In this document: positions 9,212-28,197 of the stretch, piece after piece
How the letters are laid out: every line of letters starts with the position of its first letter
Position numbering within the stretch: position 1 is the stretch's first letter
NCBI GenBank assembly: GCA_038496445.1
Contig: JALMLS010000309.1
Location: forward strand, 310,001-374,000
Origin: Trichosphaerium sp. ATCC 40318
Lineage: Eukaryota > Protista > Tubulinea
Reading direction: 5' to 3'
DNA: 64,000 bases
Program-made: the position numbers and the translations under genes
The notes under the pieces: generated by a model
What the model was told of the DNA's origin: nothing
Databases searched by the model: none
Seen by the model: the letters and a program-made list of their open reading frames with translations, nothing else

Positions 9212-11314
9212 TTACAAGACATTGGCTGTACTGTTCAAATTGAGCGTCTTAAGCGGTGCTCCACGTTGTGCTCGACTTGTTGGGCCCCTTTTGATTATTT
9301 TACCAGTGGTAGTAGGTCGTCGGCGTGCCATAGGAGCTGGCGTAGTAGTGACACGTTCTAGGAGGGATTAGAAAATTGATTGTGAGAGTGCAGAAAGGAT
9401 AACGTACTTTTACCGGAACGATTAGGCGTCATACTGCCAGCGACAACACGTGTCCTCACATGTGAAGGTGCACCCATAGTACGTTTACTAGGTGTGGCAC
9501 GAGAACCGGATCTTACATTGCTTAAAGGCTTGGAAGGCGTTCGTGTTTTCCGGCTGATACCGAGGTTTGCGCGACGTGCTTGTTCGCGATGTGCTTTTTT
9601 AGCTTCCTCGGCCTTGTGTTGCTCACGCATAACGCCAATGTATGCGCTGCCACGGTAAGCAAAATCATCAGCATGTTTGCTCTTCCACTGCTTTAGAGCA
9701 TTGAATAGCTTGCGCTCAAGTGCTGGTAGTTCTTTTTCGAATGACCGACGCATCTTCTCCTCCCTAGACCAGAAAATAAGATTGATGTTGACATGTTGAT
9801 GCCTTACCTAATCAGAAATCCAGGATCACGCTTGCTTCTGTCAGTAAGGCGATTTGGGTCCTTGACACGTGATTGGAACTCATCACGCTGTTTTCTAATC
9901 TCTGTACGCCGTTGAATCATGGACAAGATTGGTAACGCCTATTGATAAATATCAAGTTAGATTTCAAAAAGTAATAGGTGAAGACGCACCTCTTGGTACT
10001 TGGTTTCTAGCCTATCCAGCTCAGATGTATGTCTCTCTAACAAGTTGTCTGACCAATCACACGAGGTGTACGCGGTGAAAAGAGAACGGTCAACTTGAGT
10101 GTACTGTAGCTTGTCCCACAACGCCTTTATCTCAGTCCGTTTGACGGAAATGAGTTCTTCAAATTTGGCAGCCTTTAGACTCTGTAATCGCGTCAATTCG
10201 CGTTTACAATGTTCTACAACGTTCATGCCAAGTCCCTAACAACGAATATAATTAAAAACGAGCAAGAGACAGGTTGGTGGATTCGTACTTGGACGCTGGT
10301 GAAGGCCTCGATTTGCGCCAGGTCAGTTTCTAGCAAATCCCACAATGGTTTGATTTCTTGTGAATAATGTTGAATCAAGTCTTCGCGTTCAGATTTGAGT
10401 GCGAGAAGACGCTTAAAAAAAAGTAAGTTAGCCACCAAGAGTAAAATCAGAAAATTATGATAAAAACAACTGAATTATTAGTACGTACCTGTTTTTGCTT
10501 GACTTGTGCGTTCATCAAGTCTTGTGTAAGCCCAGGTGCCACAGGCGCGATAGACTCACCGAGAACAGTGCCTAGCGCTGAAATTTCATCTCTCAATAGC
10601 GCAAATGTTGTTATGCGTCGGTTCTATGCAACAAAATTATTAAGAAAAACAAAATTATTTCGAAAAACAAACTCAAGAAAAAACAAAGATTTTGTGCAAA
10701 CCTTCTCAGCCTCAAGTTGTGTAATGCATGTCTTTAGTCTCTCCAATCTCGCCAGAGAAAAGTCATTGCCCATTGTAGCCAAGTCTTGAGGAATAACTTC
10801 AGGTCCTAGCTCGGCTCCCAACTCCATTAATACTGAGTAGTGCGCTGAAAACTCGCGAAGACACTCGTCTACCATCTAGTGACATGTCATTAGTACAAAA
10901 AACGCGATTCCGAAAAAAAACGGTTATCAAGCAACTCAAACGCCAAACGTACCGCTTGTACGCGTATCAGGTCTGTAGAGAGGGCGGCAATCGTGTCCAT
11001 AAGAGAAGCGGCTTGTGGTAGTGGGTCTTCTTGCGCGCCGATACTTTGTAATAGCTGGGAGCGTTTCCCTTGCAGAGTTTGTACGTCGTCAACGAATTGA
11101 TTACGAATTGCTACGCTCTGCTTTACTTTTGCTTCTACCAATTCGTTTATCTTTGTAAGTAGTTCGTCAAGTTCCTACGGCGCGTTAACAATGAACTCAA
11201 GTACTTTTTACACACTTTCTCCCTTCTGACATTATCTACACCAATTTCGTCCCATACACTGGCTATTTTCTCTACTGCGGTGTCTAGGTTGCACCTCAAT
11301 GCTAAGTTGCTCAT
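9212..11314 (-). CDS. MAP65: Microtubule-bundling protein, MAP65/Ase1/PRC1 family
   Basis: N-terminal ..SVWDEIG, repeated LWD.L helices, conserved KDPNRL..LIREEKMRR..ELPALERKL..W..F.Y.G, basic tail. Confidence 0.88.
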
Positions 11315-20275: not shown

Positions 20276-20661
20276 CTAGCCGATAAAGCTAAGGACTACA
20301 AAGTGAAACAATAGCGAAGCGCCAATAAAATCTGCGAATGCTCTTTCTGGACTGATATTGAGGTTGCGTTCGAATTTGTTGCTTGGGTTGACTTGCATGC
20401 GTAAAGCCACTAAAAAACGTTTAATTACACTTGCGTAGTGTGCATGATCGTACCAGCCAGACAAAAAGAGCCAACGCAAGATATAAAGCCAGATAAAAAG
20501 GAGTTCTTAGGAAAGGTACCCACCATCATACAGTATACGAATTGTACAATACCAGTCAATACAATGTACGTTAAATAAACATCAATGAGTTTTAGCCTTC
20601 TAATCGTATTTTTGGAGTATTGCTCTACAAAGGTGGAAACGATCGAGAAGAGGGAAGCCAT
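20276..20661 (-). CDS. DAD1: Oligosaccharyltransferase subunit DAD1/OST2
   Basis: [50 protein letters not shown]; one intron. Confidence 0.95.
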
Positions 20662-20806
20662 TTTTTGTCGCCACGTCAATGATAAACCGAAAGAAATTGT
20701 GAAGGTCAACTACATTCCCAACGCCAAAAAACTTTGCTGTCTGTACAAAAACCCTTATTCCAGTTTTACACTTCGCGTTTAGCTGTTGTTTTCATAGTCA
20801 GTCCTA

Positions 20807-23960: not shown

Positions 23961-24293
23961 CCCAAATAAACTACTACTTGTTATTTCTACACAACTTGAC
24001 TGAACCCATTTATAAGCCACCCAATGTAGTGGTTTTTTTTTTGTCAATATTGGTGTACTTGATCTCTTTTTAAAAATGCGAATAGCACTTCACTATCAAT
24101 AATTGCATCTTGTACACATTGACAATAGATAATTTGAGTTGTTACAAATAACGCAGTTTATTGAAGCAACTCTTAAAATTATTTATACAAGTAAGCCGCT
24201 TGACTTGTTGACATGCGTTCTTCGTGACAGTCAGTCCCATCACAACAAAGATGTTTGAGCTCAATGTTACCTAGATCACCTTCTTTACGACCA

Positions 24294-25811
24294 TCAAAGT
24301 TCGAATTTAAGATCATCGCCAAGCCTGAACTCAATAGGCAAAAGGAAAGATGTGTAGTGAATATCCTATTTTAAAAGTAACAAATTAGAACAATTTGAGG
24401 TACTAATGCGTGCGGCTTACGGGCGTGTAGTATGAAGTTTGTATGTCCTTAGCTTCCCAAGAAGCTTTGTCAAGAGGTTTTAACGGAGGATCAACCGTAT
24501 TAGACGCAAAAGCGAACATGTAGTGTCCTGATAAGAACGAAGGAATCGCCACTTAAAAAAAACTCATTAAAGTACTCCGTTAATGTAAAAAAAACCACGT
24601 GTTATCCACATGCATTTTACCTTGGTATAAGTGCACGTGCTCGAAACCATTCTTCATATTCTTGTGTTGTGATTTTATAGCTTCAGTCTCAAGCACTGCG
24701 CTGTTCATGTTTGCAACAAGTGCGCCTCTTGTCTTTAACAATTTGCTACAGTCTTTATAGAATTGAGGTGAGGTGAGCTCTTTAGCAGAGTTGGTACTGT
24801 CAATAATGATGACATCGTATTGACTTGGTTTTTTCGCCTTTACTACCTCAGCACCATTATCATAAGTTATTGTTAGTCGATCGTTACTGACTGCTTTCTT
24901 AGCCCAAGTGAAATGTCGAGTGGACACTGCTACCACATCCTTATCAATATCAACTAGCTCAACTGAATTTACGTTCTTATGGCGTAGTACTTGGTGCGCA
25001 GCACCCAAATCACCTCCACCTATTATAGGCATTTTAGAGACAAATTTTTGGCAAAAAATCTGACGAATACAGCACGTGATTGCAAAAAAAGAGCAAAAAA
25101 AAAAACGTTACCTATTATCAAAACGTCAATGCCACTCTTGTCTAAACCCAAAGAATTCACTGGAACATGAGCTATCATCTTTATCGTAGGTGAGAGATGA
25201 ATTGTTTTGCGTTGGATGTAAAAAGAAACAACATGTTGAATGGCGTGTTAAGTACCTCATGATAAAAGTCTCCATCGAAAGATGTAATTTGCAAGCGATC
25301 ATCTATGATCAACATTTCGCCATAAAATGGGCTTTTCATCACCTAAAACATTCATTAAACGGCTATTTGCGTTTTCGGGTCGGAAATAGTATTTCGTTAG
25401 AAATCGTACCTTTATGTGTTGGTGTTCAGATTTGAAGTCTTCTAGTATCTAAACGGCGTTGTTAGATCTACTTTGGAATATTTTAAGTACTTTGCCCTCA
25501 AACAGGTTGCTATAGCCAGATATTGTACTGTCTTCGCGAAATACAGTAAAATCAGGGTGTATACCAAGACATGCTATATTACTACGTTTAATTTAGAAAA
25601 AGACGCTCTCAGTCGCAAGCATATCACCACTGCCATGTAACGCACCTTCCAACGCATGGGAATAAATAGCCAAGGAATAGATTAACTGTACGTTACGTAA
25701 GTAATGGCACAGTGAGTCAATTTGCATTGTACCAACGACCAAAAAACCCAATGAAATGTATAACCACTGCGGCACATCTGCAAATTTAAACTTGCCTTTG
25801 TAGAACCTCAT
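24294..25811 (-). CDS. Spermidine-synthase-family aminopropyltransferase with N-terminal TM anchor
   Basis: FYHE.MIAHVP, VLIIGGGDLGA, VDID, YDVIIIDST, IHYTSFLLP; N-terminal WLYISLGFLVVVNLFLGYLFP. Confidence 0.85.
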
Positions 25812-26551: not shown

Positions 26552-28197
26552 ATGGCTCAAACACAATTTCACGACAACGACCCTTGGCATTTGGGCATAG
26601 ACGGTTGGACTGAGTACCCCTGTGGTTGGATAGGCAAAACAACGAAGAATGCTTGTAAATTACCAAGACCGAACGCACCTCTTGTTTTCACAACCCCCGT
26701 CAAGCCCCAAAATGCTCAACCAAAGCGCAAAACTAAACGTGCAGGGTCACACCACAACCGTACATCGAAAGGAGGTACGCTTATTGATAATACTACAATT
26801 CTAGAGTTAATTTTTTTTTTGTAGGCATACCACAGCCAAATCCTTTCATAGAACATTTACAAGCTGCGCCAGTATCAGTACGTTATTAATTAATGATTTT
26901 GTTATGAATAAAAAAATCTGATGAAATTTTTTAGCTCGCTCTACGCAAAGTTAAACGCAAGGTATTCAGAACAACTGATACGATCAAGGATGCGTTGAGA
27001 CTACTTAACGATGCAAAAGGGATTTACGCGCCTGTAATGAAGATTGAAGATGACAAGGTACAAACGAAACCTTCTAATATCATCGAATGTATCATCTGAC
27101 ATACTCCTAGGCTCAATTCTATGGCTTTGTTTGCGTTTTCGATCTTATGGGCTTACTTTTTGACCGTTTCGCTGCCGTGCCTTCATGGGACCGTAGAACA
27201 GTCAAATTATGCGGGGAGAAGTTTTTAAACTATCCCGTAACGCGTATTTTACGTACGTCTCCCTTTATCCTTCCGAGACGTCCGTAGTTCACACGTCCAA
27301 TGACATTTTATTTTTCGAACGCTAACACAAGTGTTATAGACTATTCTAAAGCAAATCAAGTGAATGCCGGCCCAAATGTCCTAAAATCATCACCATTGTT
27401 CCAGACAATAAGTATTTTCCAGAAACGCATCTTACGCGTTGCTGTACAGAACGATGAGGTAATTAGACAAGCAAAGAAAATAAAAAAAACCCCAACCGTC
27501 AAAAAAAAGTTTTTCAAGAATTTTTTTTCAATTTTCATATTCTCACACTAGTAGGGACGTGTGGTCAATATTTTGGATAGAATTGATATCATACGCTACC
27601 TTGTCGGTCTTATGGGCAAGGGTAAGTTCAAAGACTTTTTCAGTAAGACAGTACTGGTACGTTTTTTAACCAAGAATTTTTTATTTGGTCATTATATTTA
27701 AAAAATTTTATTTTCGAGTTTTTACGAACTTACGATTATCTTTACGACTTTGTTCTTACGCGTGTTTCTCTTAGGAACTTGAGTTAGGAAGAGAGAGAGT
27801 ATTTAAAATCAATTCAAAGGAACCTATGTGGCGTGCTTTTGCTATCATTCACAGGGAAGGCGTCGACACTGTCGCTGTAGTCGATGATGAGGGTAAACTC
27901 GAAGCAACTCTTGACGCTGGTCAGATTCGTGGTAATTTGATTCAACGTAACCCATTTGCTGCCCTTCAACTACCTATCAAGACGTACCTTCAATACAACG
28001 GCTTGAAAAAGCCACTGATGACCTGTGATATTCAAACGCCCGTCTCTTTGATTCTATTGAAGCTATTGAGCCAGAACCATGGCCTGATTGGCATGTACTT
28101 TGTCGACAAGGACAACAAACCAAAAAGCCTTCTAACGCTTACTTCACTGATGCGCGCTCTCATCTCCCACAAGCAACCTGAGCGCAAGAGCTTGTGA
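26552..28197 (+). CDS. CBS-domain protein (AMPK-gamma/SDS23-like tandem CBS repeats)
   Basis: Repeated CBS patterns: TIKDALRLL..APV..FYGFVCVFDL, RVAV..VNILDRIDIIRYL, MWRAFAII..VAVVDDEGKL, LLTLTSLMRAL. Confidence 0.7.

Follow-up and report, generated by a model that had tools for sequence, protein, structure and literature searches.

A divergent aminopropyltransferase-like gene of Trichosphaerium sp. ATCC 40318 with a predicted N-terminal anchor and an altered acceptor site

The stretch of Trichosphaerium sp. ATCC 40318 DNA analysed here (64 kb in length, referred to below as the window) carries on its minus strand, at positions 24294–25811, an aminopropyltransferase (APT)-like gene that is, by its sequence, intact and intron-rich. 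We give about an even chance to the reading that its product is a fast-evolving APT paralogue of the secretory pathway, probably aminopropylating an amine other than putrescine. The three features of the sequence with which the original prediction began (the character of the N-terminus, the GGGD motif and the acceptor loop) are all present in the gene.

The coding region comprises nine exons encoding 334 amino acids, from an ATG at 25811 to a TGA stop codon at 24296–24294. Translation of the exon model shows a single terminal stop and no internal one; on the 5' side, an in-frame TAA precedes the ATG by 18 nt. All introns are bounded by GT-AG and are 42–92 nt in length. A candidate polyadenylation signal (AATAAA, minus strand, 24157–24162) is located 131 nt past the stop codon. 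Exon 1 (25733–25811) includes the start codon, a basic N-terminal segment (25767–25811) and WLYISLGFLVV, the first half of a hydrophobic segment; the second half (NLFLGYLFPCVG) is encoded by exon 2 (25646–25685), only 40 nt long and, of all parts of the model, the one included with the least certainty. Exon 3 (25491–25581; NIACLGIHPDFTVFREDSTISGYSNLFEGK) encodes a juxtamembrane Cys as well as the first part of the N-terminal beta domain, exon 4 (25410–25448; ILEDFKSEHQHIK) contains Q80 (human Q49, a ribose contact), and exon 5 (25256–25342; VMKSPFYGEMLIIDDRLQITSFDGDFYHE) contains Q101, D106, Y110, H111 and E112. Exon 6 (25112–25178) encodes MIAHVPVNSLGLDKSGIDVLII and the first G of GGGD. The Rossmann core is found in exon 7 (24621–25019), together with GGDLG (including D138, the decarboxylated S-adenosylmethionine [dcSAM]-binding Asp), LVDID, YDNG, the catalytic loop and ANMNS. 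Exon 8 (24421–24551) begins V-AIPSFLSGHYMFAFASN and contains F273 (human Y241) and a GHY motif of the clade type, and exon 9 (24294–24365) encodes DIHYTSFLLPIEFRLGDDLKFEL and the stop codon. In the simplest reading, the exon 8 acceptor would be at 24527; this was dropped when alignment with relatives showed that an 'IPTY..' block was missing. The acceptor adopted, at 24551, is 24 nt farther upstream and gains V-AIPSFLS, matching the 'IPTY..GHY' of relatives. Database, family and structure searches were done exon by exon, while the joined 334-residue model was used locally for hydropathy, alignment, trees and HMM scoring.

Exon 7 alone matches PF01564 (Spermine_synth) with 84.8 bits (cut-off 22.9; E = 7e-24), NCBIfam PRK00811 with 114.7 bits (E = 4e-33; exon 7 only, against an equivalog cut-off of 260) and TIGR00417 with 81.7 bits (exon 7 only, against a cut-off of 249.55). 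Its top structure matches in the PDB are all spermidine synthases, the best being 3bwb (2.7e-15). Exon 5 alone gives a weak match to PF17284, the N-terminal beta-hairpin family associated with tetramerisation (16 bits, cut-off 22.1), and HMMER aligns it without gaps to Plasmodium falciparum spermidine synthase (SpdS). Exons 3–5 align gap-free to relatives; a search of the PDB with exon 8 gave no match at E values up to 10. The gene resembles canonical spermidine synthases (SpeE/SRM, EC 2.5.1.16; 3bwb, 1iy9, 1inl, 3o4f and 2o05) in its probable two-domain fold family (PF01564 and, tentatively, PF17284), the GGGD Asp, the catalytic Asp-Ser-Thr, the YHE motif, and the ribose-binding Gln and acid. 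The dcSAM-binding GGGD is retained, as had been predicted: GGGDLG occupies residues 135–140, with D138 as its Asp, and is interrupted by intron 6. In the human enzyme, D104 anchors the aminopropyl amine of dcSAM (PMC10146546, PMC3725402), and roles in cofactor binding and catalysis are assigned to D104 and D173, respectively (PMC10146546, PMC12812037). D208 of the exon model corresponds to human D173, and Asp is found at this position in the model and in 100% of 227 relatives. The C-terminal motif Y-x-x-x-x-H-x-x-x-F-x-L-P is also retained.

No relative with an identity above 46% was found among 1.8 billion representatives. Named relatives come from Flabellula (F. baltica), Soliformovum (S. 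irregulare), Diplonema (D. papillatum, KAJ9460317), Cryptobia (C. borreli), Apiculatamorpha, Symbiodiniaceae (Durusdinium and Cladocopium) and Picozoa. Based on its sequence, the gene may be placed at the base of this protist clade, whose members usually have an N-terminal type II anchor, either inside the clade or as its sister. In FastTree and quick IQ-TREE analyses, the exon model is nested in the anchored clade; in a more careful tree of 51 rows, it falls either in a basal polytomy or as sister to the clade (sister branch support 52/75), on the stem and outside the canonical sequences. Grouping with canonical SpdS, named in the original prediction as an outcome contrary to it, was not seen: the 18 canonical rows (all from a reference set of bacterial-type and unnamed DSTDP/DSSDP sequences) are split from the model and 32 others with support of 100/97. 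In an AU test of 85 rows, placing the model on the same side of the central branch as the canonical sequences was not rejected (p 0.54); the 51-row tree resolves this as the stem position. Local HMM scores are 290.5 bits for the anchored-eukaryote profile, 271.8 bits for the profile of APTs fused to S-adenosylmethionine decarboxylase (AdoMetDC), and 271.3 bits for the canonical profile. The model has both N238 (at the position of human Q206) and Y278 (of GHY), two states that are 92–100% conserved in the clade but seldom seen in canonical sequences. Other features in common with the anchored clade are VDID and an anchor or signal with a positive-inside charge distribution. The highest identity (46%) belongs to a fragment, P0025, that was considered as a close relative with a short loop and rejected: it is anchored, but is an ACL5/TAAPT-like gene on contig L002, and represents a different lineage because it has GGGELG, EWHEG, a long loop ending in LYT, and, farther downstream, Q in place of N.

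The acceptor site differs from those of both canonical and anchored enzymes. The gatekeeping loop (24760–24801, minus strand; DSTNSAKELTSPQF, residues 208–221) starts with the catalytic D208 and has N211 in place of the Asp that anchors putrescine; extended by one residue (208–222), it reads DSTNSAKELTSPQFY and includes DSTNSAKELTS. The loss of the second Asp and the shortening of the loop, both noted in the original prediction, are borne out by HMMER, which aligns the loop to the Trypanosoma cruzi sequence DTTDPAGPASKLFGEAFY with a three-residue gap and an N opposite the second Asp. The loop is 12 residues long, a length observed in 0 of 227 relatives: it is 14 residues in all 116 clade relatives and 15 residues in 95 of 111 canonical relatives. 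The anchored protist clade has DSTD[F/Y]G-type loops instead of DSTN. Relative to the canonical DS(S/T)DP enzymes, the loop is three residues shorter, and Asn is also found at the positions of human E208 and Q206, while the canonical Trp (human Ile246) is replaced by Tyr. The E208 and Q206 positions lie in ANMNS (residues 237–241; 24700–24714, minus strand), the former occupied by N240 and the latter by N238. Most relatives have D or E at the E208 position. Further changes affect the equivalents of human D155 (N189, following D188) and human G105 (L139).

D176 of the human enzyme forms a hydrogen bond with N4 of putrescine (PMC13619349), and modelling has put a second acid in a salt bridge with the putrescine amine that does not react (PMC3725402); this second distal acid is human E208, AtSPDS1 E236 and N240 here. 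Because both distal carboxylates are replaced by Asn and the loop is shortened by three residues, the protein is unlikely, on these residues, to be an efficient putrescine aminopropyltransferase. The non-putrescine acceptor that had been proposed is consistent with N211, N240 and the unique loop length in combination with intact dcSAM-binding and catalytic residues. The Asn residues that replace D176 and E208 could still form hydrogen bonds with an amine, making weak use of putrescine or another diamine possible. Relocation of an otherwise conventional diamine aminopropyltransferase (producing spermidine or norspermidine) to the membrane or lumen, with hydrogen bonds from Asn replacing the salt bridges, is an unlikely explanation, although a number of observations favour it: the cofactor and catalytic residues are all kept, the change from Asp to Asn is conservative, the clade profile is closest to bacterial spermidine synthases (1iy9 at 2e-76, followed by 1inl and 3o4f), and a marine bacterial fusion of S-adenosylmethionine decarboxylase and APT is cited in PMC6356823 as having given norspermidine in E. 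coli. It is opposed by the joint loss of both distal acids, by a loop length unique to this gene, and by the constancy of the second-Asp position, which is D or E (as DST[D/E]) in 38/38 eukaryote clade members.

The terminal branch of the exon model is very long, at 1.36–1.41 changes per column where the median is 0.3–0.6, and is several times longer than those of the anchored protist clade. A branch of this length could mean relaxed constraint. It is one of several features in keeping with a catalytically inactive pseudoenzyme that keeps the fold, for example for binding, scaffolding or regulation, the others being alteration of three substrate-site acids (at the positions of human D176, E208 and D155), the Leu in place of human G105 within the glycine-rich loop, and the precedent of a fungal membrane-protein fusion whose APT-like domain yielded neither spermidine nor spermine (PMC12803844). 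We consider loss of catalysis to be unlikely, as a number of these changes have counterparts in related proteins: GGGDLG is shared with two family members (P0051 and P0116), and the D/E-N-G variant of the adenine site recurs in six members of the clade. In addition, the reading frame and splice sites are intact, and 28 of 31 near-invariant columns (at least 95% conserved in 116 relatives) are kept at approximately 35% overall identity, among them the Asp of GGGD, the catalytic Asp, and all three residues of YHE; one of the three columns that are lost is the second Asp of DSTD. Survival of these columns at such a low identity makes a dead gene unlikely.

If the protein is an active aminopropyltransferase, as we prefer to read it, the conserved residues suggest how it may work. 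Q80 and D158 would contact the ribose of dcSAM and D188/N189 its adenine, with the aminopropyl amine held by D138 and H111. D208 would deprotonate the attacking amine, aided by the backbone of S209 and by Y110, and transfer of the aminopropyl group would be followed by release of MTA. The acceptor would most likely be another amine, one whose distal part has greater length, lacks a charge or is linked to a macromolecule.

The N-terminus of the exon model has the short basic stretch and hydrophobic segment that were predicted to precede the catalytic domain: MRFYKGKFKFADVPQ, with four K/R and one D, is followed by WLYISLGFLVVVNLFLGYLFPCVG, and hydropathy reaches a maximum of 2.14 at residue 17 (Kyte-Doolittle, 19-residue window). 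The flank of the hydrophobic segment is net positive on its N-terminal side and net negative on its C-terminal side, and the N-terminal flank is likewise the more positive in 37 of 41 anchor-bearing relatives. These charges support the proposal of a type II membrane or lumenal enzyme, in the sense of secretory or membrane targeting that puts the catalytic domain in the lumen or outside the cell. The basic N-terminus would stay cytosolic, with the hydrophobic segment acting as a type II signal anchor and the catalytic domain directed toward the lumen or the cell exterior. No N-glycosylation sequon follows the helix in the exon model. In several of the relatives, the helix is preceded by a basic N-terminal tail of 70–137 residues; in others, the N-terminus is a classic cleavable signal peptide.

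As this region is interrupted by two short predicted introns (47 and 64 nt) and 54 splice combinations from the ATG to exon 3 are compatible with an open reading frame, the 24-residue helix depends on the predicted splicing. One alternative is a single intron of 123 nt, joining 25697 to 25573, with a gtaacg donor like that of intron 6. The hydrophobic core would then be 12 residues long and resemble a cleavable signal peptide; in this splice model, the hydrophobic segment would be cleaved off rather than serve as an anchor. A minority of the alternatives, in which splicing takes place early in exon 1, lose the succession of basic n-region and hydrophobic stretch. If the hydrophobic exons were absent from the mature mRNA, or if translation started elsewhere, the product would be an ordinary soluble cytosolic paralogue. 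The small size of exon 2, the GTG donor of intron 2 (GTA is found in the remaining seven introns) and the many frame-keeping splice paths would all allow this, yet we regard it as very unlikely: an in-frame stop precedes the ATG, starting at a downstream Met would remove the conserved N-terminal beta domain, and alternatives that preserve exon 1 wholly or for the most part still have the basic n-region followed by at least 12 hydrophobic residues. Moreover, an N-terminal hydrophobic segment is found at the equivalent place in transcript-derived full-length sequences from Flabellula, Soliformovum, Cryptobia and Apiculatamorpha, as well as in the Diplonema gene model.

The secretory-pathway aminopropyltransferase favoured here can be compared with several other derivatives of the same fold. 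It is not closest to ACL5-type or SMS-type structures, judging by the searches with exon 7 and with the clade profile: for thermospermine and spermine synthases, exon 7 matches 6bq2 at 3e-6 and lacks a match to 3c6k (compared with 2.7e-15 for SpdS), and the clade profile matches 6bq2 at 2e-43 and 3c6k at 6e-20 (compared with 2e-76 for SpdS). A membrane-tethered APT-like domain is also found in the fusions represented by bacterial PRK03612 and MFS_SpdSyn and by a protein of Pyricularia oryzae, but these have multi-pass N-terminal domains where the product described here has a single predicted helix, and they are far removed in sequence: exon 7 scores 115 bits with PRK00811, 60 bits with PRK03612 and 30 bits with MFS_SpdSyn. 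The function of such fusions is either unresolved or not polyamine synthesis (PMC12803844). Putrescine N-methyltransferase (PMT) is, like this gene, a spermidine synthase-derived paralogue and has acquired a new reaction; its cofactor site is changed (GGGD Asp to Ile) and its putrescine site kept, the reverse of the situation here (PMC3725402). Changing the GGGD Asp of SPDS to Ile turns the enzyme into a methyltransferase, and Q79T (Datura SPDS1 numbering) raised methyltransferase activity (PMC3725402). The PMT signature (GGGD Asp to Ile, YQE Gln to Thr) is absent from the exon model, which has D138 and H111 at these positions. A switch of cofactor to that of a SAM-dependent N-methyltransferase, parallel to the origin of PMT from spermidine synthase, is scarcely credible and was rejected on the GGGD Asp, which repels the SAM carboxylate (PMC3725402) and is kept as D138, with the position of Datura Q79 (human Q80) occupied by His as in ordinary bacterial-type SpdS, despite weak Pfam matches (MTS, 0.0028; Methyltransf_24, 0.028) and a fold common to class I methyltransferases.

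Eukaryotic polyamine synthesis is regarded as cytosolic. To our knowledge, aminopropyltransferases of the secretory pathway have so far been proposed only for silica formation in diatoms. The gene described here suggests that anchor-bearing APT paralogues with a predicted lumenal orientation exist in amoebae too, with relatives extending to euglenozoans, dinoflagellates and picozoans, and its sequence suggests that the acceptor pocket in particular was rebuilt in one lineage, with the cofactor-binding and catalytic machinery left in place. An active enzyme would point to a novel aminopropylated product made within the endomembrane system; if it makes ordinary spermidine, or is inactive, the gene would be a divergent paralogue and nothing more. 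The analogy originally drawn with long-chain polyamine synthesis in biomineralising algae is unsupported as an explanation, because the taxa that hold the named relatives (Flabellula, Soliformovum, Diplonema, Cryptobia, Apiculatamorpha, Symbiodiniaceae and Picozoa) are not known silicifiers, and none of the euglenozoans, dinoflagellates or picozoans in which these relatives occur is known to produce silica.

A further proposal is that the gene belongs to a two-gene system for aminopropylation in the secretory pathway of an amoeba that is not a known silicifier. AdoMetDC would be separately encoded, and the target would be a longer polyamine or an amine of a protein, glycan or lipid that is secreted or membrane-bound, rather than a free diamine. 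We put this forward as a doubtful possibility. In tblastn searches of the 64-kb window with all fetched proteins, neither an AdoMetDC nor a second APT was found, the only match being the locus itself. With the AdoMetDC region of P0233 as the query, other taxa were searched for stand-alone class 1b AdoMetDCs that have an anchor; none of the best 120 of 716 matches has an N-terminal hydrophobic segment, and most are bacterial. Should the two-gene reading be true, it would represent a secretory modification pathway not previously described, of which a fused version, with anchor, APT and AdoMetDC in one protein, is widespread in marine protists.

Both marine bacteria and diatoms have proteins in which AdoMetDC is fused to an aminopropyltransferase (Michael 2011 FEBS Lett, as cited in PMC6356823 and PMC12803844). 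The sister group of the anchored clade has the anchor-APT-AdoMetDC architecture, and fusions of this type (P0233, P0169 and P0185) share with the gene described here a bacterial-type APT domain of the DSTD[F/Y] lineage. They differ in that the Trichosphaerium gene is without an AdoMetDC domain, so that its decarboxylase would have to be a separate gene. Many of the fusions have an N-terminal hydrophobic anchor, suggesting, from their sequences, that aminopropylation takes place in a membrane-bound compartment. The fusions identified in this analysis carry AdoMetDC as their C-terminal domain, whereas it is N-terminal in those of the bacterial and animal spermine-synthase type (PMC12803844).

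The aminopropyltransferase (APT)-like gene lies on the reverse strand, from an ATG at 25811 to a TGA at 24296-24294, and its product is 334 amino acids in length. The gene model has nine exons: 25811-25733, 25685-25646, 25581-25491, 25448-25410, 25342-25256, 25178-25112, 25019-24621, 24551-24421 and 24365-24294 (exons 1 to 9, respectively). Each of the eight introns has GT-AG ends and a length of 42-92 nt, and the G+C content is 39.9% in the exons versus 34.9% in the introns. An in-frame TAA precedes the ATG by 18 nt, and an AATAAA is located 131 nt downstream of the stop codon. The exon 8 acceptor was fitted to the relatives: in the alignment, position 24551 restores V-AIPSFLS-GHY, in agreement with their IPTY..GHY. 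An acceptor at 24527 was rejected, as it drops eight residues present in every relative.

Single exons were used as queries in database searches and family scans, and the joined model only in local analyses. Exon 7 alone matches Pfam PF01564 (E 7e-24) and NCBIfam PRK00811 (E 4e-33), and its best solved-structure matches are all spermidine synthases, the top one being T. cruzi 3bwb (2.7e-15). HMMER, run exhaustively with this exon against 1.84 billion cluster representatives, returned 985 matches at E ≤1e-3, none of which reached 1e-30 or exceeded 46% identity; neither the protein itself nor a close relative was present in this set. Several of the best full-length matches have an N-terminal hydrophobic segment. 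Using a profile of these in a word search, together with cluster look-ups, we found a broad group of N-terminally hydrophobic APTs in Amoebozoa (Flabellula baltica and Soliformovum irregulare), Euglenozoa (Diplonema papillatum, Cryptobia borreli and Apiculatamorpha spiralis), dinoflagellates (Durusdinium and Cladocopium), Picozoa and many plankton contigs. Their source annotations read only 'polyamine aminopropyltransferase' or 'PABS domain-containing', and the searchable literature yielded no description of stand-alone N-terminally anchored APTs in amoebae, euglenozoans, dinoflagellates or picozoans. The clade is recognized by a DSTD[F/Y]G loop, which has one residue less than the canonical DSTDPVGPA, an Asn where the human enzyme has Q206, and a GHY motif. 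Its profile is nearest to bacterial-type spermidine synthases (1iy9, 2e-76); thermospermine synthase is far more distant (2e-43), and human spermine synthase more distant still (6e-20). A separate environmental eukaryote-like gene, P0025 (506-1318 of a 1.6-kb contig, L002, from JGI metagenome 3300045300), encodes a hydrophobic N-terminal helix, LLWFSFGAFLMYGFAYFLGY, followed by an ACL5/TAAPT-like APT (GGGELG, EWHEG and a long loop ending in LYT), which suggests that separate APT lineages have acquired a membrane anchor.

Residue roles were assigned from the literature (human numbering), and the corresponding states in the model from alignment. In human spermidine synthase, D104 holds the aminopropyl amine of dcSAM, D173 takes a proton from the attacking amine (aided by the S174 carbonyl, Y79 and Y241), and E124 and Q49 bind ribose (PMC12812037, PMC10146546); D176 forms a hydrogen bond to the N4 amine of putrescine, and residues 174-185 form the gatekeeping loop (PMC13619349). 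The model keeps Q49 (Q80), Q70 near the transfer site (Q101), D104 (D138, within GGGDLG), the catalytic D173/S174/S175 (D208/S209/T210) and, around the attacking amine and aminopropyl group, Y79/Q80/E81 (Y110/H111/E112, with His as in bacterial-type spermidine synthases). Several further positions vary in ways seen elsewhere: G105 of the glycine-rich loop is L139 (likewise in two relatives, P0051 and P0116), E124 is D158 (as in T. cruzi), the adenine-binding D155 is N189 following D188 (an E-N-G variant is found in six clade members), and Y241 is F273 (Phe also occurs in 24-42% of the clade). Both residues contacting the distal amine of putrescine are changed, D176 to N211 and E208 to N240. 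As originally described, the acceptor loop, DSTNSAKELTSPQFY, has lost the second Asp and is shortened: HMMER aligns it to DTTDPAGPASKLFGEAFY with a three-residue gap and Asn on that Asp. Between the catalytic Asp and a conserved Phe, the loop is 12 residues long in the model, 14 in the clade (116/116) and 15 in canonical sequences (95/111); a 12-residue loop occurs in none of the 227 relatives.

At approximately 35% overall identity, the model keeps 28 of the 31 columns that are near-invariant (≥95%) in 116 relatives, the second Asp being one of the three lost. Conservation of the cofactor-binding and catalytic core, with change concentrated at the distal acceptor pocket, is what would be expected of an active enzyme with a changed acceptor rather than of gene decay. 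We therefore favour, at even confidence, a putative active, lumen-facing, dcSAM-dependent APT that would no longer be efficient with putrescine. A diamine APT that has merely been relocated is a possible but distinctly weaker reading given N211 and N240. That the protein is a pseudoenzyme is somewhat less probable again, as retention of 28 near-invariant columns at this identity is not expected of a decaying gene.

In a FastTree phylogeny of 228 rows, the model falls within the DSTD[F/Y] clade (117 rows, SH-like 97), in a eukaryote subclade of 39 rows (SH-like 93). The same placement is obtained in an 85-row IQ-TREE phylogeny (LG+C20), in which the branch leading to the model is 1.41 versus a median of 0.3; the AU test does not reject placing the model to the canonical side of the central branch (p 0.54). 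In a more careful tree of 51 rows, with the longest canonical rows left out, 18 canonical sequences are split from the model and 32 others with support of 100/97, and the next branch, between the model and the 32, has support of only 52/75. Grouping with canonical spermidine synthases, which would have spoken against the original prediction, is thus not observed. These values place the model outside the canonical enzymes (here DSTDP/DSSDP sequences from the searches, a set without named eukaryotic SpdS, SpmS, ACL5 or PMT) and on, or close to, the stem of the anchored/fusion lineage, either inside this lineage or as its sister. Local HMM scores agree weakly with this placement (anchored eukaryote group 290.5 bits, fusions 271.8, canonical sequences 271.3). 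The gene thus stands apart within a known kind of enzyme: its acceptor loop is unique, and it belongs, or is sister, to an anchored lineage not remarked upon in the searchable literature.

The predicted N-terminus is basic, MRFYKGKFKFADVPQ (four K/R and one D), followed by the hydrophobic WLYISLGFLVVVNLFLGYLFPCVG (Kyte-Doolittle peak of 2.14, best 19-residue window), bearing out the earlier description. The N-flank has a net charge of +3 and the 15 residues past the helix -1; the N-flank is also the more positive side in 37 of 41 anchor-bearing relatives. In six clade members (P0166, P0168, P0180, P0199, P0200 and P0262), the helix is preceded by an N-terminal tail that is 70-137 residues long and carries a net charge of +9 to +15. 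These tails are similar to the cytoplasmic ones of Golgi type II enzymes; other relatives begin with typical cleavable signal peptides. Our reading of the family-wide arrangement is type II or secreted, with a catalytic domain that would be lumenal or extracellular. A Cys is conserved right past the helix in P0178, P0202, P0217, P0225 and P0228 (Euglenozoa and relatives). In the last four it lies within N-V-T-C-F-G, whose N-glycosylation sequon fits a lumenal orientation; the corresponding motif of P0178 is H-V-T-C-F-G, and in the amoeba model a Cys occupies a comparable position (IACLG), both without a sequon.

The 5' end is the weak point of the gene model, as 54 distinct one- or two-intron combinations maintain frame from the ATG to exon 3. 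In the preferred version, exon 2 is flanked by introns of 47 and 64 nt, of which the 64-nt one has a GTG donor. If instead a single 123-nt intron is removed, whose donor (gtaacg) is the same as that of intron 6, the N-terminus becomes MRFYKGKFKFADVPQWLYISLGFLVVGTMQ... and resembles a cleavable signal peptide, not an anchor. The 24-residue helix is thus a candidate that depends on the preferred splicing. An incorrect 5' end, with a soluble product, is unlikely, and this explanation overlaps the others: a minority of alternatives, splicing out early in exon 1, lose the basic n-region or hydrophobic stretch, but those with most or all of exon 1 keep the n-region, followed by 12 or more hydrophobic residues, so secretory targeting would hold under most splice models beginning at ATG 25811. 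Support for the original interpretation is partial: it extends to the predicted targeting to the secretory pathway or a membrane and to the altered acceptor site, but not to what the acceptor is or to a connection with long-chain polyamines. The analogy with biomineralising algae is unneeded because, to our knowledge, the named taxa with relatives are not silica makers.

A lumenal APT requires dcSAM on the same side of the membrane, and the favoured lumenal or extracellular enzyme would use dcSAM present there. The original GGGD claim holds, and since changing this Asp to Ile converts spermidine synthase into a methyltransferase (PMC3725402), its retention as D138 argues for dcSAM, not SAM, as donor and makes a methyltransferase very improbable. 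No AdoMetDC was found within the 64-kb window, and no anchored stand-alone AdoMetDC in other taxa among the best 120 matches. Proteins of the clade's sister group are single polypeptides built as [anchor]-APT-AdoMetDC, the C-terminal domain being PF02675 (class 1b); they include 10001-11284 of environmental contig L001 (ENA ERZ28548055, 59 kb), P0169, P0185 and P0233. This order, APT first, is opposite to that of the bacterial and animal AdoMetDC-APT type. In the fusions, the AdoMetDC attached to the same anchored chain would meet the dcSAM need. They lie on AT-rich contigs, the 59-kb contig having an eEF3-like neighbour and split genes, and these contigs look eukaryotic. Diatom APT-domain fusions have been called unstudied (PMC12803844), and diatom SAMDC-APT fusions are proposed, untested makers of long-chain polyamines (PMC6356823).

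Two other ORFs were observed in the window. One, at 20428-20709 on the reverse strand, matches the DAD family (PF02109, E 7e-24), as a putative DAD1/OST2-type oligosaccharyltransferase subunit, and probably represents a single exon of a gene with introns. The other, at 27826-28194 on the forward strand, has a CBS domain match (PF00571, E 2e-6).
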